Shown here piece by piece: positions 13,955-59,508 of a DNA stretch of 64,000 bases. This DNA comes from Bigelowiella natans CCMP2755 (taxonomy: Eukaryota; Protista; Cercozoa). The first letter of the stretch is position 1; the number at the start of each line of letters is the position of its first letter. Below the pieces are notes generated by a model. That model did not search any database, had not been told where the DNA came from, and saw only the letters and a program-made list of their open reading frames with translations. The stretch spans positions 1 through 64,000 of the forward strand of contig ADNK01002546.1 in assembly GCA_000320545.1 (NCBI GenBank). Direction: 5' to 3'. The translations under genes were made by a program, and so were the position numbers.

Positions 13955-15416
13955 ATTGCTTTTGAAACAAATACGCACGATTTGCGTGTATTGTCAACGT
14001 GCTCTTAGTGACTGAGTTCTGTTTGTTCTTTCGATACCAACTTTTTAACACTGAAATATTTTCGGTATATAGTTGTACATTATGTCCAAATCAAAGTCCT
14101 GTGTTGCTGTGGGAAGGAAAGGATTTGGTGTGTGTGCATGGGGTTCCGGTGACTAACGGATGAGTTTTACTGTGCGCGTGTGGTCGATCTAATGCACGCG
14201 CGGCTGTGCGCCGTACTCCTGTATACATGCAGGCTGCGGTGTGCTTCCATGCATAGCACGTACATGTGTGCATCATGCGTACGTATGTGCATTGTTGCAT
14301 GCAAATGAGCCATGCATGCTGCATGCGCGCCTGCAGCAGCATCATGCACATTCTGTGCGGTGCAGACGCACGCACAGCTCCGTCAAATCCGGTAACGACG
14401 GGGTTGTGAACAGTGCAGCGCTTTGCAACGCGCTTTGAAGCAGCAGGCAGTTGCAGTTGGTCAAAGAAAAGTCATCAGAACTTGTCCGATGGCCAATGCG
14501 ATAAACCTCAAAAATGACCGAAATGTTGACCCAAATGTCCATTTTCAAGGCCTCGGTGAGCGCGCAAAGTGTGAAAATTCACACCCCTTGTGCAGAGGAT
14601 GCACGCTGTGCATTTGTTCTCTGCCACATTTTGTATGCTTTTGCGCGTGTGTTTGACCAATAAATGTGACATGCACGAAAAAATTCAAAGAAATGCGAGC
14701 AAATCCAATTACGTTACGCGTACACATGCCATCTAGCCATGCGCACGTTTCATATTTATTTCTAGTACGTACGTAGATCTGCAGCTGCATATGCATGTGC
14801 GATCGATGCGCATAGCTGCTAGTTAGATCTAGCTATACAGATGATACAACAAGGCTAGAAGGATTGGACTGCGATGGTGCTGCGAGGCTACGTATACATA
14901 GGTCGCGGCACATCTACACATAGCTCCAATGTGCGCCGAAAGCAAATGAACAAATGAATGAAATGTGGTCGAATTACGACGACAGCAGGCTGCGACACAT
15001 CTGCACGACGTGTTACTGGAACAATGTGATTCAAATTCCGCCGTCATTCTTCTATTGTTCATGCATTATGTTGCGTTACTCTGCGAGCTAGCACGGTGAC
15101 ACGGTGACGTCGCACAGCACATACAATGAATGAATGCTAGAATGAATAAATACGTTCTCATGCTTGACAAAACACATTTATTTATTTCGCTCGCATTGTC
15201 ATTCTCGCATGCATGAAAGCAGAAATACACAACACGCTTGAACGCGGGCGGATGCATGGAGTCTCCGCGAAGAAAAAGCTACTATTATTGTGAAGGAAAA
15301 CTTCGGTGCATGAACGCGCTCATCAAATGGCGAGCAAGCTCCGTGCTCAGAGAACGTAGAAAATAACAGACAACGAATAGCCGAGGGTCCTCCTAATTCT
15401 TCTTGTTTTTTCTCAA

Positions 15417-17555
15417 TTATTTTTTCTTTTTGCCGAATTTTGGAGGTTTTGCGAGCTCCTTCTTGATATCCTCCACTGATTTAAACAAAGTAATTCAATG
15501 CACAATTAACCAACGCCAGGCGAAAATGCTGACCATCGATGGCGAAATATTCCAAAACTGTCATGGTAGAGAATAGGATTTATTTTGTAAGAAACTACTA
15601 TGATTTGGGCCTACGTTTTTGTCGCCTCTTTTCTAAGTCTTCGGACATTCTTGACTCGAATTTCTCACTGTTCTCCTTCATTATCTTTTGAGACTTCTTT
15701 GAGATCTCGGGCTTGAACTTGCATTCTATCCGGGGAGAAGCGGAGACGAGCATAACCAACACACGAATCAATGAATATCCAACACATCCACTATTTTTCC
15801 ATCTCTAGTAGGAGTGTCAGAATTCTTCTAAATCAAAATACGCGGAAGAATTCTCTTGACGTAGCTGCTGCTGTGGCCATGACTATTGATAGCGTTATAT
15901 ATCGAGTGCATGTGTGTGCATGTGTGTATGTGAGAATATGTCGTTGTTACCTGGGTCTGTCTTATCGGCTGTGGTGCGGTTCTTCCGAGCCGCGACATCA
16001 GCGGCCACACGGTCCAGAAACGTCCCCTCGATCTACAGAACAAGGCAAACAATTATGGCGAAATGTGAGAACACAAGTGGCCATTGGCATAAATCAAGGA
16101 CATGCACGGGTAAGTTACGCACGCACACGCGCATTTTAAAGCTACTATTCAAAACAAGAATGGAGCTATTTGTTATTATGCTCAACGATGACGATGACAA
16201 TGCACACCTTGACGCCTGCCGGCGTATTCGACTTAGCCGGTTGGAAAGAGAAAGCTTTCAAAATCAACAAAGATGACAATCAGAAGGGACTAGTTTATAA
16301 AACGCATCTTCAAATACATATACGGTACGTGGCCATTCAAGCTACAGGGACAGACAGGGGAGAGAGGTGAGAGAGGTGAGAGAGGTGCTTACATAAGTGC
16401 GATAACTATTTGGGTAAAAGCTTTTCTTACCTGATGTTGCAGCCTTGTCTAATGCCGCCGCCTGATAAAAACGCACGGATTCGCATTGGAACAATAAACA
16501 AATAAAATAAATAAATGAATACACATATTTTTATTTATACATATAGTTCAATGTAAGTAGTAATAAGCGGCGTTAATCTACCTTCTTCTTTCGCGTTTCA
16601 ATATCGTTCTTAGCCCTTTCAAAGAAATCGCCCTAACCGTAAACAACACGTAGTTCCAATTGTCACTCAAAAAAAACAAAAACATACCAATCACAAACGC
16701 CGTTGCAACAATATCTGTGTGTTTTAATAAACCCTCCTGTCTGTGTTACGCCGTGTTCTTGGCGGTGTGATCTTCTTTTGTATTGCTGCAGTTGACAACC
16801 TTCTTTTCCAGCTTAGCCTGCAACTCTGGAGAGATTGGGGATATTGCTGGCTTAAAGCTGTACCTTGGCTTGGGCTGATGACAAATCGATCACAAAAATA
16901 GGGAGTGGACGTGAGCCTACGCATAGACGCTATGTGTTGTTTGTCCTTTTTTGTTGCACTATGCGAGACGGTTATGTGGAATTCGTTTTTGGCTGAATAT
17001 AAGAGAAATACATATGTGTTTTGTGCGTGTAACATCAGCATGGTACCGAAAGTCGCGCTTTCATCGCCTTTTCGTGGAGCTCTAGCATCTTATCCACGCG
17101 CTGGTGGAAACTGGAGTACGACGCCACGAAGTCAAACGTTATGTGGAGAGGACACACTCATATATGATTATATACACTAATGCATACGGCTTTATTGTGT
17201 GAAGGGCACTCGGGAGAGAGAATCGCGTATGGAGAGAAAAGCACCTCTCTGATTTTCCCTTAACCATCTCTCTCGAAGCTTCGCAGATATAAGGCGTGAA
17301 CGTGCAGTCTTTGTCCATATCTGTGGCGGTAAGTTCATGAGGCATATTTTCAAAAATACATTTGCAGCAGCGAAAGCAGCACGCAAGAGGAATGTAAATA
17401 CAGCATGCGTGGAAAAGCTGAAACCGCTCCCGATTCTGTCCGCAAGGAGTCTGTCCTGTTGTGGCATTGCGATTAGCTAAGGACTGCTTTATATTACCTT
17501 TGGGTTTCTTCTTTACAACAGGCTTGGTAAGCCTATCAAGCACCTCCTTGGACAT
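15417..17555 (-). CDS. Spliced gene for a lysine-rich coiled-coil protein with CxFxPxI repeats
   Basis: Exons MSKEVLDRLTKPVVKKKPK, DMDKDCTFTPYICEASREM, ECKFKPEISKKSQKIMKENSEKFESRMSEDLEKRRQK and EDIKKELAKPPKFGKKKK*, with canonical splice sites. Confidence 0.7.
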
Positions 17556-17857
17556 TCCTGTTGTGGTAAAATGAGTGCTTTTAGTGTATTGCCACAAAGC
17601 ACAGTCTGTATTGGAAAATACAGCATTATTCTCGATACAAATTAACCTATCGACTGAACGACCATATAAAAAATTGAAAAGTTGGGCGCTCTCACTCCCT
17701 GTTAGTAAATATCAGCTTCATCAACCTTTCTTAGGCGATTTTTTGGCTTCTGGCATGCTTTCGTCTTGGTCTTCTCACGCAAAGGTTTAGAACTTCTGAG
17801 GTATCAGCAGAATCATGTGTTTCATTATATTCGGGAGTAAATGGAATTATGACTTTC

Positions 17858-17899
<42 letters not shown>

Positions 17900-18955
17900 C
17901 ATGCGACAGGCAATTGGAAATAACTGCTGGCGCATGTAGACACGCATAAACCAGATGCATAAACGGTTATCCTATTCCCTAACAGCCTCAGGGGATATCG
18001 CACTATGCTATTGCTTCGTAATAACTTCTTTCTCTAACTAAGTCATCATGTTAATCACGTCCTGAACTCTACGAAACGAGAATCAGCACCGCACCTGGCA
18101 AGGAGGTGGGATGGAAACCCTTCGATTTGTGGAGAGGTAACTGTTCGATGCAGTAAGATCTAATATGCGTTTTTCTTACAGTCAAGCAAGAAGACAATTT
18201 CTACGAAAATAATTCTGTAAAATCATGTCGGCAAAGATTAAATACATGTATTTCTTACAAGATATTAAAACCCCATTCCTTTTTCCATTTGGGTTATGCT
18301 GCTAAATAATAATATAGAAATAACACTACGTAATTAGGAAGCGACATAATATTTTGTATGTTTTTGAATATTTGCAGATATCAACAATCTATTCGTTCAT
18401 GGGTGTTATTATTTTCAAAACCGGTATAAATTGATTAAAACGGGAATTTAGAGCAGTTTGAAAATATGAACTAAGTTCTATTTAAACGACAAATATTGAT
18501 TCCTATTATTTCTTTTTTTTAGTCCCTTAACTGTTTTCGTTTTGTACGATTTCAGTTCTCTTCTCTGGAAATCGGCGGTTTTGACATTCGATCCTGATTT
18601 GTCAAATATTCAGAATAATTAATAAAAAAATCAGAATATATTGTCGTAATGTATTTATGACCTACATTAGGGGATATAATAAAATTATTCGAGTTTCAAG
18701 TAGCCAATTGAAATTCACCACGTAAACACCAGGAAATATGATCTATTTAGCACTCAGGGATGTGCAATCTTTCAAATCGAATTTGCTTAGAATGGCGAAA
18801 ATAACAGAAAATAGAAAATTATTCAATCGGAAGAAAACTGATTTGCAATAGAATTAAAATTTACGTAAAATTCACCAAGTAAAATCCTAAAATACTTACA
18901 TATATCTTAGATACAAATTACAACACTAACAACACGAAAACCAGGACACGTTCCG
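17556..18955. promoter_or_regulatory. AT-rich divergent (head-to-head) intergenic region, putative bidirectional promoter
   Basis: Lies between the inferred start codons of the - strand CxFxPxI gene and the + strand antiporter; markedly AT-rich. Confidence 0.45.
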
Positions 18956-20867
18956 ATGATGACGATGCCGTTAGGGCGCTTCGTGTCATGGGCCCTTCTC
19001 CTGGTGTGATGGGGGATATTGCCTATTCCTTTGAAAACCTATGCAGTATCAGCATACATGATCGTCTGAACGTTTAAATTGCGGCGCGTCTTGGTATTAA
19101 AGCCGTTCAGTAGCTAATTGATTGTAATTGTGTTAATTCAAGGTATACTTGTTGGATGTTAAAACATCATTGGCCCATACCTCGGAGAGCTCGAAGGCTC
19201 CCTCGAGGACACCTCTCTCGTCAGTTTCCGTAAGTGATGACGGCATTGATGCCCGCCTCGAGAGTAGTGGAACCCAAACCCTTGCTGAAAGCACCGAGCT
19301 TCGGAAGAAGGCCGAACAGGTAATGCATGCTGCACGTTTAAGCAAACGTTGATGCGGGTAGAACATTGCGGTCTACCAAACACTCTAGCCCTTCTAACAA
19401 GCTTTAGAAAGCGAATTAGCGAGGATTCAAACATACAAATTGAGTCCGTGGTGGACGCTCTTTCTCCTGCTACTACATTACTATGCTGTCATTTTCCCCC
19501 GCCACAAGATGATCTCTTATAGTCTACCATGGCACGTACGTGCATTGTCTGCTTATAAATCACAACAATAAGGAGGAAGAAGACGCAAACCGGGAGATAA
19601 GTAAACTGCTCCGAAAGGTGCGTCTGTTAGATAGGTCAGGCATATCGTTCGCTCTCTTGCCCGCCTCTTCTTACAGAGGCAATCTGATGAAGGTCTTGAA
19701 TTTTGAGGCGCTATTTTCTTCATGTTTCATCTCCAAAGATTAATCGATTGAGAGAAGCTGGCTCGAAAGTCGTCGAAGCGGTTGGAAGATCACGAGCTTT
19801 CGTTCGCACTCGTGCCGATTATTTGAGCATTGAGCTCTAGACGCAACACTGCCTCTCCCTTCTCTCTCCTTCTTAATGCGCCATTTTCTTTTCCAGCACA
19901 CACAATTCTACAAAGGGAGAGAGGGCGAGAGAGAGAGAGCGAGAGCGAGAGAGACGAATATAAATACATCGCAACATAGCGTACTGACAAACGCGCTAGG
20001 ACCGCTTATACATGCGACTTGGTTGTTCAGATATTTGACATTGCAAAGCAAGTTGGAAGCGCCCACGTCCACGTCAACGTGTCCTCCATTCTCTGGTCAG
20101 AAATGCCACGCACCAAAGCGGAAGCACAAACACACGAAACTGCGCTTGTTTACAAGATGGCTAGGAAACGGCGTATTAGCTCTGAATTGCATCATGCGAT
20201 TGTACAATCCACCGACAAGACCAGAACATATATCACCTATTCAGCTGGGGAGGGGGGGCGGGGGGGGGGGGGGAGGGGGGAAGGTGAAATATACCCGTTG
20301 AAACCGCAAATTACAGGGACATGGATAGGAAGCAAGATCGAAGGGCCAAAGTAACGTCACTACCCTATTTACGATTTTCATACCCATTCTTTTATGGGCG
20401 ATGGTGGTGCTGCAGCACAGCGCTACTATATTCAGACGTTGATTGCTCGTTATTGATTGGTATTCCGACGGGGAACATCCCATTTATCTGTGAAACAGGT
20501 GATGGAGGCTGTTGCGAATACGACGCGACGAACTACGCATCTTATTGACTCCCAATCTCAAGCTAACGTCAGAACCGACACTCGCAAACACATACATACG
20601 CGACACCACGCTGTATAGAATACTGGATGAAATCGCTTGCATTTCGGATGGCATGTGTGTTGAAATCGGGTTCAGGCATGGTGGTGGGGGGGCGGCAGCT
20701 CCAACCGCGAAATGAAGGTAGTGAATCGAGCTTCTAAACAAGTCAGGTATGGAAGAACCACCACACTCTGCATATACAATAGCATGGTCACGCCTCTGCA
20801 TTGCACAGAAGATCCACCATGAAACAACATATCCTCGTGTTTGAGAGGAAGTCGATTCTTGTTGGCA

Positions 20868-20905
<38 letters not shown>

Positions 20906-21468
20906 TACCATTGTCAGTAATTTACTGGAACGAATCGTCGCGGAGCAGGAAGGGGTGCGTGTTAGCTTTTTTGTCCGTTTTTGCTCATTTTTGGTAGCTC
21001 TCATTTCTTCATTCATCCAAGCCCATCACTCAAATGATATCCTCTTTATTCAAACGGATTGTGTGGGTAAGTGTGTGTGCGTGTGTGTTGCGCAGGATAT
21101 AGATTCTCTCAAATCTGTGGTGAGGCGGCTTCATTTGAAATCTTTAAAGCACGCCTCTCTTATGCAGCAAGTACTCATTTCTTCACACAATACGATGCTG
21201 TATGCTACTTATCACGTGCAAAATAGAAGCCTTCATGTTTATTAAACGTCAATAAACTGTATGGGCAATAAAGAGAATTTCGGCGATACACGCAGTATTG
21301 GCGAGTGCGCTTCGTGCTAGCATTTCGCGCACTTTGTACTCACTAAAGATGTGGGTGTGTCGGTTGTGTGAAAGATACGTTCAAGTCTCACACGACTGGT
21401 GTCAAGACTGGACATTGCACATGATTCTCTTAATACGACGAATATACGGGTAAGTTACACGCAAGAAT

Positions 21469-21515
<47 letters not shown>

Positions 21516-21646
21516 CCTTGATCTCCTATTTTTATTCATCACACATACACACACGCACACGCACACGCACACACCAACTCAAGCTGAGAACAAATAAAGG
21601 ACTCTAAAATAAAACGGCTAAATAATAATGATAGAGAGACAGAAAC

Positions 21647-21693
<47 letters not shown>

Positions 21694-22056
21694 GGGTTGG
21701 GGGTGGGGGGGAAGAGAGACGCAGAGGAAAGATACCAAGAATTCTGGCGTTGTTATCCGCAAGTTCATCATTACTTCGTTTTCGAATATCATCATTTGCT
21801 GTAATAAGACCTCGCAGCATAGTTCGCAACATCTCTTTCTAAGGTTTCTCTCTTGCCCTCTTTCTCTCGCCCCACCCTCCTCCCCCCCCCCCCCTCTATC
21901 CTACTGCGCAGGTTGCAATGCTTGAGGCACTACGTGTTCGTGTAGATAAACGATCGGAATTGGAAAAAATGCTTCGGAACGCACAGGTTTGGTGCTCGCC
22001 ACAACAACGTGTTCTGACGTGGGGTGTTTTCACAGATGGACTTGAATATCACTCTC

Positions 22057-22093
<37 letters not shown>

Positions 22094-22175
22094 ATCTCTC
22101 TTCTCTCTTCTCTGTCTCTCTTCTCTCTTTTCTCTTCTCCCTTCTCCCTTCTCTCTCTCTTTCTCTATCTCTTCT

Positions 22176-22224
<49 letters not shown>

Positions 22225-22730: not shown

Positions 22731-22763
<33 letters not shown>

Positions 22764-28773: not shown

Positions 28774-30121
28774 TCTCTCGACGCAAGTGCGGTGTTTGAT
28801 TGCGAAAGCAATCACATTTCAAAATCCATGCTGAGCACACTGATGGGCTTGTTCGTTAGAAAATATGCAATGTGTTAGCTCCCGGTGCATTTCCGGGTTC
28901 CTTTTCATGCATGATTGCATGCTGACGTATGAACGCACACAGCGTCACCTTTGTCATAACACCTTTGGACGATTATATATGGTCTTGTCGTTGTTCTCAG
29001 CTATCTGCTCTGCGTGGGGGTTGTTGTCGTGTCAAGTTTGTGCTTTCCGTTCCTTCACGTGCGACTGATGCAATCAAATCTCGACGGGATGGAGAGAGCT
29101 TGACACGCCATCCACTAGAATAGCAATGGTGTCCATCTGGTATTAGTGTGTATTCTTGCATGCTGGTATCACATAAGCCTTCAATACTGCCTCACAACAC
29201 GAAGGTTGTGTTTTCCTTTTTGTGGGACACTGCGTTGTCAATTTTTAGCAGCCTTAGCTGGCATTGTGCAAGTCGCAGAACATGCATTCTACTAGTCTAC
29301 GTGGCTTGCAAGACAAGCGCTTTGAAGACAATTCAGGAGTGTGATTGTGGGAAGGATGATTTTGCCCTCACGTGCAACTTTGATTGGTGCGTTGTTCGCG
29401 CCCATGAGCGACACGACCACTTTGATAATTTCAACAAGTGACTGCGCAACAAGATGCAATTCTGGAATTGTCTAGTCTAGTATAGTAGGTGAGTGGGACT
29501 CATTGCAATGAAAAGATGCAATGCTAGAATGTTTTCATTGAGATTTTGACTTGGATCGTCGATGTGCTGCACTAATGAAAAAACGCAAGTCTAGCAAGCT
29601 AAAAGGATGCGCGCTAAAAAGCCGCCATGCTAGCACGAGTGTTCTGTGCATCTACATTCAATCTGCATTTAGCACATGCACAACAAATAACCTTAGTCAT
29701 CATGCTAGCCTAGTAGCATGCATGCGCGCGCGCTCCCGACGAAATCTTCATTTTCTAAATGTACGCCAAGACACGTTTGAAATCTTGGCAAATGAAACGA
29801 CAGTAGGACAGCGCACATGCTAGCATACATGTGCATGTAGCTTGTGCATTTGCGCATGTAGCTGATGCATTGCATGTGCAAAAGCGCGCACCGCTGTAGA
29901 AATGTGGAAATTGGCACATACACAACCAAAAAAACAACAATTTAATGATTGTACCAAAACCAATAACATAATGCTGTATTCCGTAGATAGCAATTAGGTT
30001 GTGTATTATGATGGCCACGCACCACTTCACGCACTAAACACTGTGATTCATCTCATTGCAGACAAAAGGCAACTAAGTTAGCGTGACAGCACTCTTCTGA
30101 CGCTCCTTTCCATCAGATATA

Positions 30122-33100: not shown

Positions 33101-36098
33101 AAGTGTGGTGTTATGATCGTCAAATTGTAAGTCAAAAGGATAATTCCTTTGTAAGTTATTTGGGGGCTGTTACTCTACCATTCCCATATATATAAATATA
33201 TGTACATATATAGTATACGCTACAAGCACCTAACGTTTACTAATATATATTGAACACCTTATTGAGACCCAGAATCGGTTGAAGATATGTGAAAAGAGGG
33301 ATATTTTTCGTGAAATCTGCAACAGCGCTGTCCGTGGCGAAATGGTGAAGATGCTCTAACCTATCGGACGGATAGTTACGTTACTAGCAAGCTATTAAAC
33401 TGATTTTAACATGTGTAGACATTCAGATATGCATTCACCCCTTGATGTAGGTCTTTTCCGTACGAATAAGCTCGGATATCTCATTTGACGTCTGAAATCC
33501 CAAATTACAAGTAATGCGCGTTACCAAAATCAAACACACCGTTCTGAAAAGCACAGCAAGACAACTATTCTTGTTGTGATACTCATTACATATTGTTTAT
33601 ACATAACAGTTGAGCACGAACCTCTGCAACGTCATGTCGTGGCGTTTCTTGTGGAGTAAGAAGTTCTAGCATAACCTGCATATTGTTAGCAACATCAGTG
33701 TATACGCACCGCTTTATACGACAGTATATATAGTATCATATATATATTTCACAAGGAATTTGGAATGGAAGCTTACATTCGTAGGGTTATTAGCTGAATC
33801 GGAGTCCTACGTTTATTATATGAAATGTATTGATGTATTCAACACAAAAATATTTGAGTATAGAAGCAGGCCGATACAGACATCCCTCTCTCTCTCTTTC
33901 CATGTGTGTATGCGTGCGAATGTATATGTAAGTACTTATATAATATATTTAATATATTATAGTATCACATTTTCATTTAGATTTCCATTTCAAATGAAGT
34001 GTTGATAATGTATATCATGTATATCATTTCAAATGAGGATGGATATACCGAAGCGCAAGGGGCGTCTGCAACCCACCAAGACATATCTTTATCAATATTC
34101 ACGTTAAATATCAAATATCATCTTTCATGATGTTATCCAGATTGATAACGCTAATAAGTATTTGTATTCTCGACTAAACTAATATACAAAACCATAAACA
34201 CACACAAACACACACACACACACACACACACATACACTCTATACTCTCATACATGTTTATTAGAACGGATAGCATTCAGCCATAATCCTTCGATTTCACA
34301 CATACATTTACGTGGATGGCATTTATCCAATTAACCTCTATCTAAGGTTCATCGGGGAAAACGTACATCAACATTTTTATGTATATCAAACTGATTTTCC
34401 ACTTATTACCAGTCCAAAGAGACGAATTGCTGGTGGAGGCAGTGCCTATTCGCAACATATAATATAGTCAAGATAAATATTGCTAATCAAATGACAAGAG
34501 AACGGTTAGCATCATATTACTACAATAAGTAGATATTGACTCATTATACAAAATGTTATGAAATTATTAAAAAAAACCTTCTGATAAGTGTTGTTATATT
34601 ACTATTCTTAATGTAAACGATATTTTGTAGTTTATATTACTATTGCGGGATGGCGTTGGCGGTAGATCATCGCCCTTTTTATCTGGTCGTAGATTAATAT
34701 TTGCAGAACTATTACCACCCGATTCTCCTAAATCCAGAACAAACGCTTTTAAAATGTATATTAAACCTTTGCAAGATCGTCACTTCTACCTCTTAAATAA
34801 TCGGAGTGGTATTCATCAATCAACTCTCTGCTTTGTCTCTTCTCCTTTCCTCTATATCCTTGTTGCTTCTCGGATTGATTATCGACTTTAGTTGGTGGGA
34901 AGAAAGTGATATCGATATTTTCTTGCTTGTGTAGGGGCACTGTTGCCGGTTGGTCAATAGCACTTGCTCCTTGCATAAAGTCGATAATATCAATAGAGCA
35001 GTCTCCTGCGACACTGCGCCAGCTATTTATTCTAGATATTGATGCTGGGGATGAGGTAAATGACGAAGAATTATTTATTGGGACAGCAGCAAAACTCTTC
35101 GGTGCTGCCTTTTGTTTACTAAATTGAAGGGGTGGGATTTTAGACCGACTAGAACTAGACGAAGAGGGAGTAAGGCGTCTCCGACTGGTGTGATCTTTCA
35201 AAACCTGTATAAATATATGAATTTGCAAGACATTAACTTTGAGCCTAATTTTACTCTAATAGTTATACAGCGTATGCATAAGCGTCCTCTTCTCACCGTC
35301 TGTCGTAAGCCCCTTTGAAGCGTAAGCTTTGAAAATGCATCAACAGGAGTAGACGTACATGCTGCAACTGTATGTGGTTGACGAACCGCACCATCAGGAA
35401 GTAAGGGGCAAATAGGTTTTCTTTGGAGATACGGTTGCTTCTTTTGGCGTCTTATCAACGACGTATCCCTAATTGGACGAATCGTACTTTTGGAACTGAG
35501 TTTCAGCTCTAATTCTTCCATAATAGCTCGTCTTTCCTTTTGTTTCGGGTTATTTAGCTTAGTGGAGGCCGCATCTGGCTTTATAGTAGCAGTATATTTA
35601 GCAGAACGAAGCCTCTCAGGTACTGAAATTATTGTTTCCGGGGCACTTTTTCTGTGCAATTTCACAAGTTTCCTTGCAGGTCTTCTAAGAGAGGATGGAG
35701 GATCTGGGAGACTTACTCGACGAGCTCCGTTCACCCCTTGTCTTGGAATAGCTCCATCGATTTTTCGTGCTTTTGTTTCGACATTCCTGAATTGCTGCTG
35801 AAGAAAAGGATTCGGTCCTAGCTCGAGATACGAAAACGAGTTGGGTCTATCCTTTCCCTTGCTTCCTCTATTTAATGAATAAACGTCTGAAATATCCGCG
35901 CCCAAGCTTTCGTTGGACATTGTAACGATCGGCAAGGATCTGACGAAAGGAATAGTAGCAAAATAGAATAAAGAAAATGTTCATTTTGAGTAAGGGAAAC
36001 TTAAATGCACAGTTGATAGAATGGGAAGCTGATAAGTTGACTCTTTGAGCATCATGTTGAAATGGTTGAGATAGATAGTTTTTGACATCTTTCCCCAT
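30122..36098 (-). CDS. Dbl-family Rho guanine-nucleotide exchange factor (DH-PH) with long disordered N-terminus
   Basis: Spliced DH motifs ISELIRTEKTYIKG (~33439-33491), FFKMYKSYIQNHDSALKAL (~32790-32850), SLLILPIQRICR|YKLLLENIIASTP (~32477-32577, ~32290-32353) and ITRHINHAM. PH motifs are RFILQKTVKK and PRELFLFSDMLVY (~31170-31265). There is a large N-terminal exon at 35320-35940. Ends are approximate. Confidence 0.87.
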
Positions 36099-47150: not shown

Positions 47151-48724
47151 TGAGCTGTATTTTTCATGCCTACTTCAGGTTTTTGTCTTCAAGTGCCCGG
47201 ACCAACCTAAGGTATCTGTGCTAGTTGTTTCATCGGGTTCTTGTCACAATTCGCATGGCAGAGAAAATGCATGCTCATCGAGTGCGTTGTTTCTAGGCAA
47301 GTGTTTCCACTGATTTTTCTCTCTCAATGACACTCATCAGGCCATATATGGAATATGGGGATTGGGTGCCTTTGGCAGTGCTCATGAGGTAGTTGAGCAG
47401 TAATAACCGCAGCACGGATAAAGTAAAATTCAGCCAGCTCAATGGCCTACTGTTTTTCCCTTTCAGGATGATCGGAGTTGAGTTGGGAGACATCGGCCGA
47501 GTCCAAGCTGCTGGTAATTGATTGGTCATATCGGTTTTTCTGCTGCGGGTGTCGTTGTTTCTCTGCTTTCATTCACAGTCCATCCTGTTTGGATCATTAC
47601 GTTTGTTTACGGTTTTCCGATGCTTCTACCCCGTGATTTGCCCATTCGTGTCGGACAGTGATGAGTTCCAAGGAATTGGAGCTGTCGCACGATGGTTTCA
47701 GAGTTCGGTTGGAAAGCTCGGCGTCTCAATCCAGCGGGGGGGCATCGGCCAATGCGGACGGTCCTCCCAGCCTCTCGCAAGGCCCTGAATGAAGGCTACA
47801 CCATGCCATGGAGGATTTTGGTCAATGAGCTTCGAGGGAACTAGCATCGGTCATCAAACAGAACTCGCCGAGGAATAAAACCTTAGCGTTCGCAGTCAAC
47901 CATGAAAGTTGGTCAATTAACATGCGCCGGTGCACATTTCGTGGGCTTTAGCTGCTGTGGAAAGTCGGCGCCATTTGGCCACCATGCTAGCCACGTGCAT
48001 TGGTCCGATGAATTCCGATAAGTTTTGTTCGCGTCTAGTTCGCGTGTTTCCAATCGGTTGTTAGTTTGGCACTGCTCAAACTAGCACTCAAAATAATGCA
48101 ATGCCGATTGGACGTCAGCACGCTAGCCTACCTAGCTACTTGCGCTTCGAAACAATTATTCGGGTTGACGTTCATACCTGGTTATTGGTTAGAATGACAT
48201 GTAGGCATGATGATGGTTTGAGTGACTATGATAGATGGAAGTGGTGAATGCCAGCATGTGATGCATGCAACCATGTTCAGGAACAGTCACAGGGGACGAA
48301 ATGATGGGGAAAACACGTAGCACACATGTGGTCTTTTTACTGCTGCGACATACAAGAAAGCAGCCATATGCTAGCATGGTGAAGAACACAACTTAACATT
48401 ATTCACCTAGGCTAGTTTGTGCAGCAAAAGTGGGAGAGTGCAATGATTTTTTTTCATCCAAAAAATAAAAAATGGCATCACATGCATGATGCGTCGTAAT
48501 GCGAACGCTATTCCGGGATGATGGAACGACCTAGAGACACGAAGCTGGCCCGCAAAAAAGCCCAAGTCCCGCGCATGCTAGCGGCACAATGCTCCTAGCC
48601 TTATCATGGGGTTTCACATTTAGATATGCATTTCAAGCTTGCTAATATTGCCATTTCATCATCAGGGCTTCAGTTATAGAGTGCATCGTTTTCAAAAGCT
48701 TTTGTTGACGCAACGTGCTTTCTC

Positions 48725-48746
48725 AGTAAGAGACAAAGTATTCATA

Positions 48747-48778
<32 letters not shown>

Positions 48779-48838
48779 AGTGTCTCTAACTATACGAGTA
48801 AGAGACAAAGTATATATTTATATGTATGCGTGTCTCTA
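48725..48838. repeat. Two tandem units AGTAAGAGACAAAGTA-(TA-rich)-GTGTCTCTA, each a small hairpin
   Basis: An AGAGACA...TGTCTCT inverted pair flanks a TA run in both units (48725-48788, 48796-48838). Confidence 0.8.
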
Positions 48839-49416
48839 CCCTCATACCGAGCAAGCTGGTTACAGTGGCACTTAGTCATTGCTGTGCGAACAATTCGCTG
48901 TCACGAAGATGAGATGACATCGATTCGATCAAGAAATTGGCAAATTGCTTGCGCCCTTCGAGAAGTCTAAAATGCCTTCAAATGAAACAGTCTGCTTTCC
49001 CAGGAAGCACCAATGTCAATCAGGATTGATGAGGTCAATCTCACTATCACCTGGGTTGCGATGGCTGTTGTCCTGCGAAGCCTTAAGACAAAGAAACACC
49101 AATCAAAGTGCGAATTCATTCCGTTTCGTTTTCAATCCAAGTCAGCAAGAGCAATGCAATCTAGACACATCCGCATCTAGTATGCATGCATGCATGCATG
49201 CGTGCGTGTGCGTGTGCGTGTGTGTGCGTGTATGTGTGCACTATCTAGCTATGTTTGCGCAGCTACATTTGTACGAGTACGTGTCAGTTCTAGCTAATAT
49301 CCGTGCCACCACCTCCTTCTCTTCGTGCATGCCTGCTTTTGAATAATATCCCCTGGTGAAATCAAATGGAGGTCACGACACTGCCCATGTCGCATGGGCC
49401 CTCGTATGTGCACACA

Positions 49417-49458
<42 letters not shown>

Positions 49459-49543
49459 AATAATGAATATATACATATGTAGTACTTGTATAATTTACTA
49501 GGCTTATTTGCTCGCACAACGCACAAATCATCCAGCGCAACAG

Positions 49544-50956
49544 TTACCTCTCCCCATGCTGCCGCACACCCGATGCGGCATCTTCTTCGTCATCGAAAGG
49601 CAGCCCACTAGAAGGTGAGACTTTCATGGTGTCTAGCTGCTTAAAAGCTTTGAGCGCTTGAAGAACTGAAGTAGCCTGCACAGACAACTCATGTTCGCCA
49701 TACGATTCTAACCAAGGTAGCTTTGCGTCAGCGTATTTCTTAGATGTGACCGCTGAATGCGGCATTTTCTCCTTTGTCAATGCCGTATACACTGCAGCAT
49801 TCACCAAATGCACGAAGATCCTTGTTTTGCGCCTGGTGTCATACTCTCGCAGGTCACAGGTATCCTTGGGAAAGTTCTGTTTGATCTTGCCTCCCGCGGC
49901 TACTCCGGATCTAGGTACCACAGCTCTGTGCCGGTACCAGTATGGAGATTGAGCCCCCAGTCGGTGAAGAAAATTTACTGTTTTCCCCTCCAAATCTAAA
50001 GCAGGGTCGCTTGCCTTTACCTTCTCGCCAACTTTGAGACCCAACGCACGCGGTGATAGTAGCGGCGAAAGAGTTACAGGTTTCTCGTCCTTTTCTGCAG
50101 AGAACGTGGTTGCATCTTTAACCTTGAGCGGATAGTACACGAGCTGCATGCATCTTGTGTTATCTTTCCCAAGGATCTGTTTCTCAACGGATAGGCCGTT
50201 CTTTAGAGGCGGGCCAGTAAACTGCCGCACATAACCATTGCTACAGCTGAAGCCGTCGATCCAGCCATATTTGACATAATTCTGTTTCGTGTCCGGAGTT
50301 TCCTTCTTCAGACCGTCACTCTTCGTATATGTTTCGCCTGAAATAGCGTTTTTCGTTCCTGTAAAAATCTGCAGGGCAGCCCCGTCTTGTACACCCATCA
50401 CTTTTTTATTTAGTATTGCTAGCATGGCCTCGGATTGCCGGACGGGGATAACTACACCTCCTCGCGCCTTCATCAGTCGTGGAGCATTCTCGAGGCTATT
50501 GACCGAACGAGGCCGGAAGAAACCGAAACACGGAGGGAGAGGATATTCTTTCTCGGTGAGGGGAATACGCAGAGTTCTCATAAACTCAATAGTCATGTTA
50601 CCAATGGAAATCTTGCTGCCGTCCACCTCGAAAGCAGGGATATTCCTTTTCTTGTCCTGCAAGGCTTGCAGGTCTGCCCAGATGTCGTTGAGGGGCGTAT
50701 CCATCCCAACGACGTGGTTGCCTCCCTCAGGGTCGAGCTTGCTAGCTTCCCCCACCGTGAACGTGGCCTTCACAACAGGGATTTTACCGACGATTTCATT
50801 GCCTTCGAGAAGCTTACCCGCATAGATAAAGGGCGTCAGGTCAACAGGAACTTTCCGGTCCTCCTGTATTCGCTGCTTCACATCGTTGATGGTATCTCGG
50901 GGGTCTACGTCCAAGGTGATCTTCGCACCAACCAGAGATTTGAGGTGGATCTTCAT
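49544..50956 (-). CDS. Intronless 470-aa protein: N-terminal ubiquitin-like domain fused to a conserved uncharacterized domain (F.RTLRIP...YPLPP family)
   Basis: MKIHLKSLVGAKITLDVDPRDTINDVKQRIQ...IYAGKLLE aligns with ubiquitin and has no terminal GG. Downstream motifs FMRTLRIP..EYPLPP, RGGVVIPVRQSEAM, WIDG...VRQF, AAGGKIKQ, FVHLVN and LPW match a family I recall from fungi and bacteria. Confidence 0.88.
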   Translation of the reverse strand: MKIHLKSLVGAKITLDVDPRDTINDVKQRIQEDRKVPVDLTPFIYAGKLLEGNEIVGKIPVVKATFTVGEASKLDPEGGNHVVGMDTPLNDIWADLQALQDKKRNIPAFEVDGSKISIGNMTIEFMRTLRIPLTEKEYPLPPCFGFFRPRSVNSLENAPRLMKARGGVVIPVRQSEAMLAILNKKVMGVQDGAALQIFTGTKNAISGETYTKSDGLKKETPDTKQNYVKYGWIDGFSCSNGYVRQFTGPPLKNGLSVEKQILGKDNTRCMQLVYYPLKVKDATTFSAEKDEKPVTLSPLLSPRALGLKVGEKVKASDPALDLEGKTVNFLHRLGAQSPYWYRHRAVVPRSGVAAGGKIKQNFPKDTCDLREYDTRRKTRIFVHLVNAAVYTALTKEKMPHSAVTSKKYADAKLPWLESYGEHELSVQATSVLQALKAFKQLDTMKVSPSSGLPFDDEEDAASGVRQHGER

Positions 50957-51416: not shown

Positions 51417-52139
51417 ATGCGGGAGATAGCAACAATGGAGCTCTCAGCTGTGACTCTACTTCTGCAGCTCAACGTGAGTTGTCAAAGGAGAGAAGGAGGG
51501 GTTTGGGCTGCTCGCGTGATCTTGCCGCCTGCTGCTATTGCCTCCCCGTGTTTTCTTTGAATAATGTTTTTTTGAGTTCTTCAATGGTTGGCAATTATCA
51601 TTGCAGGTTGCATTGGCAACCCCTTACCCGACTTCCTACCCGACTCGCTTTCCGAGCTTGTATCCCTCTCGTTTCCCGACTCGCTACCCGACCTCGTATC
51701 CCTCTTCTTTCCCAACGATGTACCCAACGCCATCTTCAGGAAGTAATAGACCGAGCGAGCGTAGCTATGTGTAACCTGTTTATAGATTGTAGTTCGGGGA
51801 CAATAGATTTTAGATAATGAAAGAAGCTGACACGTCTTTGGACCCACCCAGAAAACTGAGATTAGTCGTTTATCTATGCGTCGTGTTGCCCTCATGCTAT
51901 TTGCCTCTCCTATTTGAATGGGTGAGTGTATCGATTCGTCGGTAGTGTTTATCCTCTCTTTCTCTTTCCAACCCACCACTCCAGAGCCCCCACCGTTGTG
52001 CGGCCACTGACTCGTTTGTGCATGTTACGCAACAAGACATCATGGTTACAAATGGCGATTATCGGCTGGTTCCTATTGGGCAGACGAATCATAGGCTCTT
52101 CCAGGTGAGTGCAAAAACGCGAAGAACAATAATATATAC

Positions 52140-52178
<39 letters not shown>

Positions 52179-52427
52179 TTTTGTATGCACGCCTTTTATA
52201 TTTTCGAACGGACGTGTGCTGTGCCCGAATTCCCCCGGTGTTTGCCTCTCACACAAAAGTAGAGCTCTATAAACGGGGCAAACACACGCGTATATGCACG
52301 CTGGGGGAGCGGCAGAGGAGAGCCTCAACTGAGCAGAAAAACTACCGATGCCATCACTTGCCGGCAATGCGTTTCGCTATTAATAACGAATTTATCAAGT
52401 GATATTCAAACAACCTCTATATTTATT

Positions 52428-52461
<34 letters not shown>

Positions 52462-53172
52462 GTTTATATCTCGAAATTTCCTGACGATATTTGTACACCA
52501 TAAAAACTCATATTGAAAAACATACGAAAAGGCGAAATATCAAGGCCAATGGGGAAGTGTTTGCTACTGTAAGAAATGAGAATGAAAATCACCGTTGAAG
52601 AATGACTAACGATTTCATGCCGATGCCTTTCGGAGAAGATGATGAATGTTTAAGTTGCCAAGAGACGTTGGCGAGCATTGTTACTGCTTCAACAAACCCT
52701 CAAATAACTATTTTGTATTTAATATGTCTGATCGCATACGTAATTGATGATGACTATGCGGTACTCTATCCTAACAGCTTTGCAGTTTTCTCGCAGATGT
52801 GCGCTGAGATATTCCAATGAAGTTTGTGTGTATTTCTCTCTCACATCAGCTGGCATGGGATCAAATGTGGCCTCAGTAATGTGTCGCTCAGTTGGTGCGT
52901 GAATGCGGCGCCTAATACTCAACAACATGCTGCCTACAGCACCAGCCATTCATGCAAATGAACACGAATACAACACATGCAGCAGCTCGAATGATGACAC
53001 CATTCTCTCTTCTAACCAGGTCTAGAAGGCAATAGTTGGGCGTCGTATTCTTACTCCTGTAATGACTGTAGAAGAGTAGAGAGATCAGTGCTGTCAGAAT
53101 TAAAAACACAATCAGAAATCCGTCGCCACACAAGACAATGCTCATCCGTGTACAGTTCGTCAAAGTTATATA

Positions 53173-53212
<40 letters not shown>

Positions 53213-54089
53213 TGTCCTAATTGTAATTTGTATAGTCTATCGTTAGAACTCTAGCTTGCCACCAGTACTTTTATGCTTTTTGCCGTGCGTCGCACGTCCA
53301 ACAGATTCGATCGCCAACGCATCTCGATTCAGCTACATGGATGTTGTCTGTAGCGGGTACTCGTCGCCCCAACCTTATCCCGTGTTGTGTATTGACGAAT
53401 AGACGTCTAAACCACTTTGCATATCACGAATGTCTCTCTCATTACGATTCGAGTCTGTTGCGCAAAGACCAATCCAATTCCTCATGTAACGTTTTTGGTG
53501 CGTTTGAAGACTTGAGAATGACCTCGGTGGCTGCTCGAAAATCCCGGTGGACAGCTCGAGCTGGAGCTCAAGCGTAATTCAATTTTATCCCAATGGAAAT
53601 CATTGGCTGTTTTTAACATCTCCTTCGTTCTTTGTTCCAAAGATCGGAATTGCTTTTTTTGTGTGCTAGTAGTGTATTGACACGAATGATTTGGTTTAAT
53701 ATTTAAAACGCAACACACAGAGCTGCTCAGTTCCGCAATCCAATAGCGTATCGGTCGCTTGTGAAGGTGTGCGGAATACGCAGCACAAAGAGAAGCATTT
53801 ACTACATCCGAGCATCTTCTTTTAGCATTAAGCTCTGATGCAATTCTTTCTCATCTTGCATTGTTTAGAACCTCTCAATATCACCTTCCGTCTCCAATAT
53901 GGTGGAAATTCCGGTAAGAATCGAGATTGTTTTCAAGTGCAAGAATTGTTGCGTTTCGAGTAGATTTGAATTCTAATGAAAAGGGATTAGTGAGCAATCA
54001 CGTAGGACGCGTGTGTTTTTGGTTGTTACGCCGTCAGTTATGTAATGGTGTTAAAAAATACCATATATGAATATCAATAACATACCAAC

Positions 54090-54173
<84 letters not shown>

Positions 54174-55241
54174 ACACTAAGGTGAATTTTGTACATTTTA
54201 GAATATGCTTCTTGCAAATCACACGCATAAGCGTTCCATCGTTATCGTGTAACTTGAATTTGATTCGAATTATCTTGCGTCCAGGGACCTTACTAGCAAC
54301 CGTCAATGGGCAGGAAGGGTGCTTTTAACAACAACATGGACACACTCCCCACCCAACAAGAATATGATGACACAGTTCCAAACCTGAAAAAAACTGAGAT
54401 TTCGATTGGACGGCTCTTGTTAAATGATGCATAAGTCGCCTCTACACAGCGATCGCCATTGATCGGAGGCAGCTGTTAGTTCGAAACGCACTGTTTGCAT
54501 ATAAAACGTCCTTGTGCGACGCCTTTGTGGATATTGCTACTTATATGTGCGTCAATGCCTTTGTTCGCCTTACATTTCGCCGCTATCATCCGTGTCAATT
54601 TTGTCCCCCAACGGACTCTGATATTTCGATAACACAGATACGTTTGCGACGACTTCTTTGATTCTTCCTCGGTACGTACTGCCCCAAAGAAAACCGCCGC
54701 TCGATGCTGCTGTTGGTGCCCGACAGCCTTGCTCTAGATTCGCATCCACCGAGCTCACACGCGCATGCTCAATTGGTTTCGTATATCGAAGTCGCAGGAT
54801 TAATGTTTGTAATTTTATCAGGCTGCTGTAGTGTGTCGCAGCATGGGATTGCCATGGTCAATGCCCATATGTACTTCTTACCGCACCCGTCGCAACGCCG
54901 TGTTTTTCCCCGGGGGAATTGGATATTCAGACCCCCCCCCCCCCCTTCTTCCCCTCGACGGGAAATATTTTAGTCTTAGCGTGTTTGCAATCCAGCGCGA
55001 GCGATCGATGGTGATAGAATGAGACTTCAGCAATTTGTAGGCTTCTATCTTGTTGATTTGAGATCATTGCCCCTTTTCAGGCAAAATGCACGCGAATACG
55101 ACGTCACAGCATATTCTTAGTAAGTTTCTGAGAGAATTCTTCATGTTAAAGCTATCTTAGTTCAATTTTAGGCCTTTGATGTTTGGTTTGTTTGGCACTA
55201 CCACAAATTCTTTTCGCGAGATTTTTCATGCGAATATATAC

Positions 55242-55280
<39 letters not shown>

Positions 55281-55737
55281 TATTTATATTTCAATATATG
55301 TAACATTTCGACGAGAAAGCCAGTGAGATAAGGAAGAGGGGGGGTAGAAGGGCTCGAGAGAGGAGGGGGGGTATGAATTGAAGAAGTGAAAGGCAACTGT
55401 GAGCACACACTTGGATGCATTTGCAGATTGACTTGCTTCTCTTGCACTATTGCTTTGTGTTTTTTCACACTATCATTCATCCAAATGAGTCATGTGCGAC
55501 TCTCAAATGCAGCAATGAACCTCACTGCTACTGTGCGTTCTACACAGCCCCTTTGTGCTCGATGATGTTCAGTGTACAGGACGCGAGTCGCAGTTTAAGC
55601 AATGTAATATGCGAAATTGGTGGGTGTGTTATCCGTACGTGTACATTGCTCGAGGAAGGCCACAGTCGCACACGCACGTGCACTTACACTCATATGTAGA
55701 GGAAACAGATATTTTTTAAATATATGTTATATATTTT

Positions 55738-55773
<36 letters not shown>

Positions 55774-55895
55774 AATTTATTGGTTATATATTTGCAATAT
55801 GTTTACATATATTATCCCAGGTTCATATTCTAGGGTACATAACTGCTATTCAGCCGAGGGTAGGCCGAGTTCTTTTGTTCCAATACGATATATAG

Positions 55896-55937
<42 letters not shown>

Positions 55938-56394
55938 TTGTGTGTGTGTGTAAGAGAGAGAGTCTTTCATATTAGAGATCAGTTCCAATTTACCTACGGT
56001 TTTGAGAATTGCTTTCGTACACCGCAGTGGTGGGATTGACCTGCTCCAATTCTACGAGTGGAGGGGGGGGGGGGAGCTCCAGTTATACGTCATCTGGAGT
56101 GAATATGGGTTTGGATATATAAAATAATTACTTCAAGTGTGACGATGCAAGAGATGTATTCTGCTAGCTTTGTGCTCGTTCTCTCGCTATCTCCTCCCCC
56201 GGCCCCCCCTCTGCTCTTTGTATTGCATAATGAATTCTTGCGTCTGGCTGCTCGTCTGGTAGCAGTGTGGACGTTGTGATGACGCGAATTCCCTTTCTGA
56301 TTTTACAAATCTACGTGATCTCAGATGCACTACTTGCCTTTGGAATCATCATACCCGTTTGCCTCTTTGGAGCGTATTTTGTGTGGTAATATAA

Positions 56395-56429
<35 letters not shown>

Positions 56430-58329
56430 ATTATATGCATTGAATGCATGTTTGTATAAAGTGTATGATTGCATTGAATATACTGCGGTTGCATACACTG
56501 GTGGCATTTATTTGGGAACCCTGACCGAATATTAGCATATTATGATTATATAGTATATATATATATAAATATATATATATATATTGGTGTGTGTGTGTGT
56601 GTTTGTGTGTGTTAAGATCTAGATTTATGCGTATTGCGCTCATACCCTCGTGTATGCTTTCGGTGTACCTATGTTTGGTTTGTGAAGTTAAGGCTTTGAT
56701 TTTCAACTTTTAGGAAACGCTGGAAACAAGGGCAAGAGACCGGTATTTAGAAGTAAATCTGCATGCATGTGGCGTGGTCTTTCCTCTAACTAGCTAGCTG
56801 GGGGTGTGACGTGGGCAATTTGCTGATTTCGACGGCGACTCGTATTCAGGCCAACGAAACAATGCAATTCGAATGGGTGGCACCAGCCCTGCGCCAGCTG
56901 TTAGGTTGTAAAGCGCGTTATTTTGAATTGAAATGAGGAGATTTCAATGTGCTGACATGGACGTCGCAATGCAATGCTCCTGGGGCCTTCATTGTCTAAC
57001 TCGCTGCCCTAACGCAGGCTGAGAAATTCCGTGTCAGTTGAGCAAAAAGCAAGGGTGGAGTTCCAACAGCCGAAACCCCAACGGATCCCGGTGACGCAAT
57101 TTTGATGCACCAAAGCGAGATTTTCAATGAAGTTTGGGATGAATTGCTTACTCTCCCTTATAGAAGCGCGTTTTTTTACTTGCTCTGCGTGCTGGCTTTG
57201 AGTTGAGTCCGGGTATGAATATCGCTGTTTTTTGTTGTTGTGGGATGATGCGGCAGGTGGCACAGCCTGTCATTCCGACTGCTCAAGTGGTAGTGATAGT
57301 CCGCATAGACACTTCTTTCTCGCACCCTTTTTCGCAACCGTAATGAACTTCTCGCCACTGCATTGCTGGCGTTTCTGGATAGATGCTTGAGTCACAGATA
57401 TTCCGACATTGCGTTTCTTTGTACACGACTAGGAGAAGTAATGAATTGCTTGACATAATTATCTGCTGTAGATATCCTCAGGAGGGCAGCCTATTCCTAC
57501 GGCACAAGTGGTAATTAACCGAATACGTGCGTGTTCTTAATCTTTTCTCCACGCATAGTTGGCCCATAGTTATGGATGTGCTCGAAACGCAGTGTGGTCC
57601 TACGATGGTTCCTTGCATAGGAAAGAAATGGAAGTGTAGATTTTTCTCTGTTGATGTTTTCGACATGCGAGTATGTTCTTGCGAGTTTGTTTTGTTGGAG
57701 GTTCTCGCGTGCTTTGACACGGTTCTATGATGGTAGGTGTCTGCACAAGGAGGTTATCCCGTTGCGCAACCACAGCACCCAGTAGCTCAGCCGGTTTATC
57801 ACGTAATATGAATTAATACTGAGTAGACTATGTTTCAAACATGTATGTGTGCGCCTTTGTGTGAGCGTGAGAGTGAGTGTGTGAGTGCTCGCGCTATGGT
57901 ATACTAGCGATGTATTATTCATTCCATGGAAAAACCGTAAAATTTTAATTTTTGATCGTATTTGATGTCTATCGATAACGGCACACTCTTCGAAAATAGC
58001 GGATTTCGTACAATCTTCACAATAGCCTAGGGAAGTATCATATCATGAGGAAATGTCCAAACGTGAGCGCGAGAACTCATATGTCCACGCGCTGTTTTGT
58101 GCATATATACTATCACAGCAACCTCTACCAGGATATTCGTCGCAGAATGCGGGATTAGGATACCCTAGTGCGCCACCAGCATATCAAGAGCAAGCCCCTC
58201 CGGCCTACTATGCGGTTGGTTGCTATTTCTTGCTTATCGTTTCTACATTTTCCGTGTACCCTTAACTCGCCAGAGCTCATTTCTGTGCAATGTGCGGTTT
58301 CGCAGGACGCCGATGAAAATCCAGAATAG
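51417..58329 (+). CDS. Type I membrane protein: signal peptide, PT/PS repeats, SRCR (scavenger receptor cysteine-rich) domain, TM helix, PPxY-bearing tail
   Basis: MELSAVTLLLQLN|VALATPYPTSYPTRFPSLYPS.... The SRCR is split over exons GTLLATVNGQEG|YVCDDFFDSSS|AAVVCRSMGLPW|...PFVLDDVQCTGRESQFKQ|CSYSRVHNCYSAE|VGLTC (54286-56057). TM is ALLAFGIIIPVCLFG, and the tail is YPSAPPAYQEQAPPAYYA|DADENPE*. Confidence 0.82.
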
Positions 58330-58769
58330 GCTTGTCCAAGCTATGAAGAACTTGCAAGAACTCGTTTTCCACCCTTTGAAAGGAGAGTTGAGTTGGATTT
58401 TTTTTGAGTCGATCTCGTCTCCGCTGCGATTTGTCGCGGCCATCTCCGCATCATCATCTGCATGACCTTGTCATTTGCGGTAGTAAAGCGGTGTTCACCA
58501 ACAGCCTTGTCGCGATCAATCATGCCGTCGATAGCGACTTCGACCCGAAACGCCTTTCCAAATGGCCCCTCCCCAAGGTCGTATTTGATTTACGAGAGAG
58601 CGCACAGTGATGCACAGGTTGAGCTAATGGATAGAAGAGCATACTGCAAGTTCCACAGATTAAAGCCTCAGTTTTGCATGATAGACATGCAATATGTTAT
58701 ATATATTTATTCGCGTAAATGAGTACGTGCACACATGCATCATACTATAATACAATCTAGTATGATGAG

Positions 58770-59220
58770 TGCTGCTATATCTTTCGCAATGCACACATGT
58801 TGGCTTTATTCTACATGTACGTGTCTGTTTGCTCGATCTCCCTCCGCGGAAGCAGCAGATGCACCACACTTGCTGTGAAATTCATCACACTAAGTGTTTC
58901 TTTAGAACGTGTTGATTGTGCATCACATGATGCATGAGAGCATGCAGCACTCTAATACTTACGTTTGCACACACGCATGACTGCTGCTACATCTTTGTTC
59001 GCAATGTGCTTTCTACTTGAACATTTCTGTTTGCTCTCCTGTTCCGTGGAAACAGCAGAGGCGTCGCACTATTGTCCTCACTGCGTTGGGCTGCATTGCT
59101 AGAATGCCTGTCACCAAACAAAATTCATCACACCGAGTGTTTTTCCAGAGCACATAATGACTGCGCTAGCTAGACTGTGCGTTATTTGCTCTACATTAGC
59201 ATGCGAGCATGCAGCGCGCA
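58770..59220 (+). repeat. Degenerate ~210-240 bp tandem duplication in convergent intergenic spacer
   Basis: Shared blocks TGCTGCTAYATCTTT (58770/58982), TCTGTTTGCTC, CAGCAGA, AAATTCATCACAC (58878/59121) and GAGCATGCAGC. Confidence 0.75.
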
Positions 59221-59508
59221 CTTCAGCGTTGAATGACAGACAAGCATTAGTATTTTATTTTTGCGATGATCATAGCAGGCACCACGAAGACGCACAATAA
59301 ATTTGTCCTGAGCAGTGATGTGTCAATATGCGGCAGTTTCTACTCATACAGGATTCACAATCGCGAAGCAAAAAAGCAAGAACTGAGCACGGTGTTTTGA
59401 TGACAATCCATACAACTGCATCGCTATGCGAGCACATCCGGACATTCATGCGGCTTATGTGGGAAAGAATTCCCTTGGCGCCTACTGGTTCAAATATTTA
59501 CATGCATG

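Follow-up and report, generated by a model that had tools for sequence, protein, structure and literature searches.

The window analysed here is a 64,000 bp stretch of Bigelowiella natans CCMP2755 DNA (positions 1–64,000 of the 128.9 kb contig ADNK01002546.1; assembly size 91.4 Mb). Four spacers in it, numbered in Table 1 and together making up 9.8% of the window, are unusually rich in short palindromic motifs. We read their DNA, with a probability of about 0.55, as a composite of 8 bp insertion scars centred on CTAG, mobile elements and editing of TpA to TpG or CpA, in which the mutator responsible for the editing is just one contributor. For B. natans, a hypermutation that is specific to TpA and strikes integrated viral DNA and mobile DNA has already been published (Mettrop et al., bioRxiv 10.64898/2026.01.13.699255). 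In the present DNA the scars represent derived insertions, and editing has affected them as well as the copies of a miniature inverted-repeat transposable element (MITE).

An earlier note on this DNA had claimed that convergent (tail-to-tail) spacers stand out by their palindromic motifs, and for the motif enrichment of the four spacers the claim held. Together, CATG, TGCA, CTAG and GCGC occur at 39.2 per kb in the four spacers, while the mean of the window is 17.0. For each spacer, all non-overlapping windows of its length scored lower, and in 100,000 random placements the total was never reached (p ≤ 1e-5). Compared with window DNA outside the spacers, enrichment was 3.54-fold for CATG, 3.37-fold for CTAG, 2.51-fold for TGCA and 1.75-fold for GCGC, and approximately 10-fold for the hexamers TGCATG and GCATGC. 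The note had further stated that nearly all introns and the divergent spacers keep ordinary TA, which is broadly correct. Verified introns have a rho TpA of 0.87, and the divergent spacers, which are putative, carry 9.5–12 motifs per kb, at or below background. Intact (TA)n is not confined to these controls, however, as spacer 3 also contains a tract of it. Six further islands of the same kind lie beyond the window, giving ten on the contig. A single inserted repeat family, which the note had named as a possible source of the signal, is not the cause, because the spacers do not align with one another and spacers 2 to 4 are single-copy except for microsatellite-like tracts and one old 67% match. 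Neither an Rfam family nor a tRNA gene was found.

The CTAG sites carry evidence of insertion. CTAG occurs at 6.2 per kb in the spacers and 1.8 per kb outside, and as it is enriched, a process that destroys TA cannot be its source. The direct repeats flanking the 303 CTAG sites of the whole contig (129 kb) have lengths of 0 bp (180 sites), 1 bp (64), 2 bp (22), 3 bp (5), 4 bp (27), 5 bp (3), 7 bp (1) and 8 bp (1), with a sharp maximum at exactly 4 bp, where approximately one site was expected. Of the 32 sites with repeats of at least 4 bp, 31 are within islands, and all nine scars in the window fall within the four spacers. Across 57.7 kb of island DNA, a perfect 4 bp duplication flanks 93 of 399 CTAG sites, compared with 1.6 expected. 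The scar unit is an 8 bp insertion made up of CTAG and a duplicated 4 bp target; the duplicated tetramers are varied, with a strand-symmetrised target consensus of C-A-T-G. Genome-wide, with control counts in parentheses, CATG-CTAG-CATG was found 3828 times (7), CAAG-CTAG-CAAG 1815 times (13) and AATG-CTAG-AATG 1117 times (6). The mirror form CAAG-CTAG-CTTG was found only 12 times against 1815 for the direct form, and we therefore conclude that the scars arise by direct duplication and not by the building of palindromes. Two scalings, one from the contig and one from the share of CATG targets, agree on approximately 20,000 exact scars in the genome. Repeat insertion at one site was also seen, as CAAG-CTAG-CAAG-CTAG-CAAG.

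The polarity of these events can be read from the MITE, a 416 bp family with 14 bp terminal inverted repeats (CACAGCTCCGTCAA / TTGACGGAGCTGTG) that start with CACAG. At least 143 candidate copies are present in the genome, and 28 copies from across it were compared individually. By inspection, repeats of 2–3 bp flank 21 of the 28. The sampled copies (L011–L039) occupy the centres of palindrome-rich islands. Against the 28-copy majority sequence, which contains only two TA, we found seven extra 8 bp events, with duplications of CTTT, TTTG, CGTT, CTTG and AAAT together with one double event at CAAG. Another MITE copy on the contig, which is degenerate, bears CTTG-CTAG-CTTG. As these 8 bp are extra to the family majority, the scars are insertions that postdate the spread of the MITE, and CTAG in the spacers was gained by insertion rather than spared from editing. 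Other small insertions in copies L026, L025 and L036 were a bare CTAG without duplication, a bare GATC, and the 8 bp AATTTTAT beside AATTTTAA. RNA reads on the MITE copy in spacer 1 (14401–14600) have first mates nearly all on the plus strand (21.9 versus 0.66); they probably stem from many copies, with the family transcribed in one sense. We found no description of this MITE in the literature.

The same copies document the editing. The signature of TA changed to TG or CA that the earlier note saw in the spacers is partly borne out: a change at TpA has acted on spacer DNA, in MITE copies and scar centres, while the richness in palindromes cannot be reduced to that signature. In the 28 MITE copies, at least nine dinucleotides occur variously as TG, CA or residual TA, and in a few cases as CG (e.g. 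TA 12, TG 10, CA 6), and the states of these sites are nearly independent (lowest p 0.015 among 36 pairs). TG and CA cannot be interconverted in one step; an ancestral TA has been edited separately in each copy. At the centres of perfect-duplication scars in the 57.7 kb island sample, we counted 93 CTAG, 38 CTGG or CCAG, and no more than 8 of any other one-letter variant. CATG-flanked scars genome-wide comprise 3828 with intact CTAG, 1013 with CTGG or CCAG, 127 with TTAG or CTAA and 9 with CCGG, a ratio of TpA edits to C/G transitions of 8:1. In the ordinary genome, GC→AT changes exceed AT→GC changes by a factor of 2.65 (Mettrop et al.). CTAG is thus not immune to editing, and the site-level outcomes suggest that an A before G is a poorer substrate.

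Outside the MITE the editing is much lighter. Rho TpA is 0.63–0.80 in the spacers and 0.88 in the window, with an erased island (2158–3151, Table 1) as positive control, and rho CpA+TpG in the spacers is 1.35–1.55. In the unique core of spacer 1, with the repeat removed, rho is 0.89 for TpA, 1.59 for CpA+TpG and 1.71 for GpC. Arithmetic on the counts puts TpA outside CTAG approximately 20–25% lower in the ten islands than outside them. Around the 28 MITE copies, rho TpA is 0.09 inside the element, 0.48 at 0–100 bp, 0.57 at 100–300 bp and 0.73 at 1–1.4 kb, and CATG, TGCA, CTAG and scars, at 20, 22, 10.5 and 2–3 per kb near the MITEs, drop in parallel to background. Alternating purine–pyrimidine tracts make up 117 bp per kb in islands and 113 bp per kb outside, with a TA share of 18% versus 39%; an equal amount of tract in which (TA)n is replaced by mixed TG, CA and CG fits the conversion of microsatellites by transitions. 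In the 12001–18000 test stretch, which was compared with raw reads of one RNA run, one RNA contig set and two DNA contig sets, the unique parts of spacer 1 and its surroundings (13432–14418 and 14662–17849) show no difference from the reference in the contigs of two 2025 DNA runs. At the viral-region divergence of 4.2e-3 per base reported in the preprint, approximately 4–5 differences would be expected over approximately 1.1 kb of spacer 1, which weakly disfavours present-day hypermutation of this spacer at the viral-region rate.

The targets in the preprint are viral regions of 25–186 kb and 124 clusters of at least 3 kb with a rho TpA of 0.43 or less, and spacers between converging genes are not mentioned there. 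An ADAT2-like candidate is named in that work. As in the preprint, A:T→G:C transitions at TpA give TpG or CpA here in the MITE copies and at scar centres (1013 versus 127 genome-wide), and mobile DNA is hit hardest. Unlike the published targets, the DNA here is edited mildly and over spacers of only 1–2 kb, and single-copy DNA and the 8 bp scars are affected too, more weakly than the MITE. The spacers are not TpA islands in the published sense, as values below 0.43 occur just in 200 bp patches and in the MITE; the erased island at 2158–3151 does reach the TpA threshold. In the literature searched we met with no account of editing in these spacers, of edited scars, of a link between scars and the mutator or of a polarity test, and none of scars or special spacers in B. 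natans.

Fungal repeat-induced point mutation (RIP) converts C to T in duplicated DNA, for the most part at CpA. The editing described here resembles RIP in that repeated or mobile DNA is aimed at, each copy is hit independently and flanks may be touched. It differs in that the change runs in the opposite direction, from TpA to TpG or CpA, and non-repeated DNA is also changed. We know of no link between editing in B. natans and a sexual cycle.

The scars find their closest parallel in the excision footprints of cut-and-paste elements of the Tc1/mariner type, which consist of the target duplication and a few terminal letters from each end of the element. The scars share with such footprints a duplication of fixed length around a constant short remnant, a preference for palindromic targets, repeated hits at one site and, from the seven events in the MITE copies, a derived state. 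Unlike for known footprints, a resident element that has a 4 bp duplication and CT...AG or CTAG ends was not found in the 226 kb scanned. It would be unusual for approximately 20,000 excision footprints to lack a visible parent family. When inverted ends with a target duplication were sought, the number of matches was close to chance, and pairs of the form X4-CTAG...CTAG-X4 are accounted for by biased targets. A 1.4 kb segment at 87501–88886 of contig C1191 (L003), which is bounded by a 10 bp inverted repeat (TCTAGGCAGC) and the 4 bp AACA and has ends that contain CTAG, was also considered and rejected as a parent: its inverted repeat is only 10 bp long, and the motif at its ends is present only three times in the 226 kb. 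Its boundaries are probably due to chance.

In the composite that we favour, the setting would be DNA between gene ends, as in spacer 1, the core of which appears untranscribed between two poly(A) ends. An insertion process adds 8 bp at every event, namely CTAG and a duplicate of the 4 bp target, with CATG-like targets preferred; most simply, the scars would be the footprints left behind by a cut-and-paste element after its insertion and departure. Small mobile elements such as the 416 bp MITE land in the same spacers, and the known TpA mutator edits the result, taking MITE copies near to completion and unique DNA and scars to roughly 20–30%. The sum would be DNA rich in CA and TG, in purine–pyrimidine alternation and in palindromes. 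These sites may be preferred because insertions are tolerated there, or because mobile DNA is surrounded by silent chromatin.

How far this DNA is tied to convergent gene ends depends on the spacer, and the convergent arrangement claimed for all four was confirmed by RNA for spacer 1 only. There, the left gene has GT..AG joints at 12276–13111 and its RNA contig ends at 14067, and the right gene shows CT..AC joints, ten of them between 15475 and 17725, with a loose poly(A) end at 15272. Because the splice joints lie on opposite strands and the transcripts end at these two points, spacer 1 is truly convergent, and its palindrome-rich DNA and three scars fall between the two transcript ends. For the other spacers the indications are stop codons, one Pfam match and weak skews. 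The borders of all four spacers are stop codons on the strands that the earlier note had assigned. Spacer 3 is flanked on its right by an intronless ubiquitin-family open reading frame (ORF) on the minus strand, the only Pfam match among 19 ORFs searched. Compositional skews agree with convergence in six of the ten islands. Donor-motif counts (left +37/−29, right +28/−37) are not significant. The verified genes of the test stretch have exons of 30–110 nt, introns of 120–225 nt and weak splice signals (G|GTR, YAG), and this structure explains why strands could not be called ab initio. An exon/intron parser that was self-trained strayed onto antisense or microsatellite signals, and k-mer strand-asymmetry scores tracked T/G-rich introns and called just three of the ten islands convergent at the required geometry. 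We regard the tie to convergent gene ends as well founded for spacer 1 and plausible for the other spacers.

The explanation offered in the earlier note was that a TpA mutator is aimed at convergent termination zones, for example by double-stranded RNA and small interfering RNA or by R-loops from overlapping read-through, and that the palindromes were made from TA-rich DNA including (TA)n. We consider this unlikely, though several points favour it: the islands are located where modelled genes converge, edited scars are present in spacer 2 where no repeat is detectable, alternating tract is retained while TG and CA replace TA, and TpA outside CTAG is reduced across the ten islands taken together. 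Against it, no opposite-strand overlap that would indicate read-through was seen in spacer 1, and no reads at all mapped to 14801–15000, in approximately 6% of one RNA run. TpA in the unique core of spacer 1 is normal, editing is much stronger inside the MITE than around it, and what the preprint reports as targets is viral inserts and mobile elements, with no class of spacer among them. The peak of editing on the MITE and its fading with distance fit a targeting of mobile DNA at least as well as a positioning by read-through. Conversion of TA to TG or CA in non-island DNA in silico gave a correlation of only approximately 0.4 (r) with the observed 4-mer shift and cannot create CTAG. At 40% conversion, the predicted densities per kb (observed values in parentheses) were 6.2 (9.4) for CATG, 8.4 (12.0) for TGCA, 4.2 (6.4) for GCGC and 0.95 (6.7) for CTAG. 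Double hits from TA to CG were rejected as a source of GCGC, since CATG-CCGG-CATG occurs just nine times genome-wide.

A broader proposal, to which we give a somewhat smaller chance, is that head-on termination zones carry a mark, in chromatin or RNA, that recruits both a staggered-cut insertion or excision activity, from which CTAG and 4 bp remain, and a TpA-editing enzyme.

Several observations weigh against the composite reading itself. A parent element with a 4 bp duplication and matching ends was not found in 226 kb, a small sample biased to islands, and the de novo indels in those of the preprint's tables available to us include no 8 bp CTAG insertion. The TpA gradient could reflect MITEs landing in the cores of islands rather than editing that spreads outward. 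RNA proof of convergence is limited to one spacer, and 26 MITE loci elsewhere were classed as 4 convergent, 5 divergent, 8 tandem and 9 unclear by a method too weak, recovering only three of the ten contig islands, for these counts to weigh either way. Finally, CATG, TGCA and GCGC exceed the conversion model approximately 1.5-fold, CTAG falls 7-fold short in it, and TGCATG is 2.7 times commoner than CATGTG, a gap that random conversion of (TA)n, which should yield both equally, does not predict.

These excesses of CATG, TGCA, GCGC and TGCATG speak for another reading, in which GCATGC, TGCATG and CATG would be selected functional sites, strand-symmetric terminators, insulators or protein-binding sites, to which scars and editing are incidental, and in spacer 1 the words do fall between the two poly(A) ends. 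We see only a slim chance of this, as the spacers have no alignable sequence in common and no Rfam family or tRNA gene was found. CATG is moreover the preferred insertion target and each such insertion adds another CATG, yet just 14 CATG out of the 163 in islands touch a scar. That nothing specific has happened, and that the islands are decayed microsatellites with a compositional quirk of non-coding DNA, is very improbable: long degenerate (TG)n and (CATG)n tracts are indeed present, but the exact 4 bp peak of flanking repeats, the 150:1 ratio of direct to mirror forms, the 8:1 excess of TpA edits at scar centres and the lack of the pattern in introns all contradict it.

The remaining features are collected in Table 1. 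In spacer 4, the first 240 bp past the stop codon of the left gene (58342–58580) have a rho TpA of 0.24 and are 67% similar to five other loci; this segment could be an old mobile fragment or a 3' region common to paralogues. On contig C1191, two weaker CATG/TGCA islands at 70328–71376 and 75222–76693 have no scars and near-normal TpA, and may belong to another class or not lie between converging genes. The ubiquitin-family ORF has a paralogue with 64% identical DNA on another contig (G000:C694:16385–17556). A homologue search with the 260 aa ORF at 35201–35980 on the minus strand returned no match, nor did an exact-protein look-up.

Table 1. Spacers, scars and associated features in the window
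Feature	Position	Strand	Remarks
TpA-erased island	2158–3151		positive control; rho TpA 0.03, no CTAG
Spacer 1	13955–15416		convergent, confirmed by RNA; gap between transcript ends ~14068–15271
MITE copy, 3'-truncated	14373–14709	+	read depth ~100–400x that of neighbouring DNA; 4 TA in 337 bp
Scars in spacer 1	14729–14740 (CCAT-CTAG-CCAT), 14851–14862 (AAGG), 15133–15144 (AATG)		exact 4 bp duplications
Spacer 2	28774–30121		single-copy, no other genomic match; stop codons at both borders
Scars in spacer 2	29288–29299, 29520–29531, 29706–29717		flanking duplication
Edited scar in spacer 2	29458–29469		AATT-CTGG-AATT
Spacer 3	47230–49543		right neighbour is the ubiquitin-family ORF at 49544–50956 (−)
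Scars in spacer 3	48028–48045 (7 bp duplication), 48128–48139, 49241–49252		flanking duplication
Edited scar in spacer 3	47763–47774		CCTC-CCAG-CCTC
Repeat tracts in spacer 3	49180–49241, 49403–49458		degenerate (CATG)n/(TG)n and intact (TA)n, respectively
Spacer 4	58330–59508		no exact scar; scar with 1-mismatch duplication at 59095–59106; ACAT-CCGG-ACAT at 59434–59445
Diverged tandem copies in spacer 4	58765–58870, 58977–59070		from sequence

Until now, reports of the TpA mutator were confined to large viral inserts and strongly depleted clusters; here the same change is seen at lower intensity, in short spacers between genes and also in single-copy DNA. The 8 bp scars amount to a built-in reporter: thousands of them are identical insertions that can be dated, each with a central TA that has been edited or left intact. 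How far the mutator reaches, which contexts it prefers and how it acted in the past thus become measurable from one genome. The approximately 20,000 uniform scars without a visible parent element are a problem in their own right. If termination zones were marked, gene architecture would steer two forms of DNA rewriting into the same 1–2 kb.

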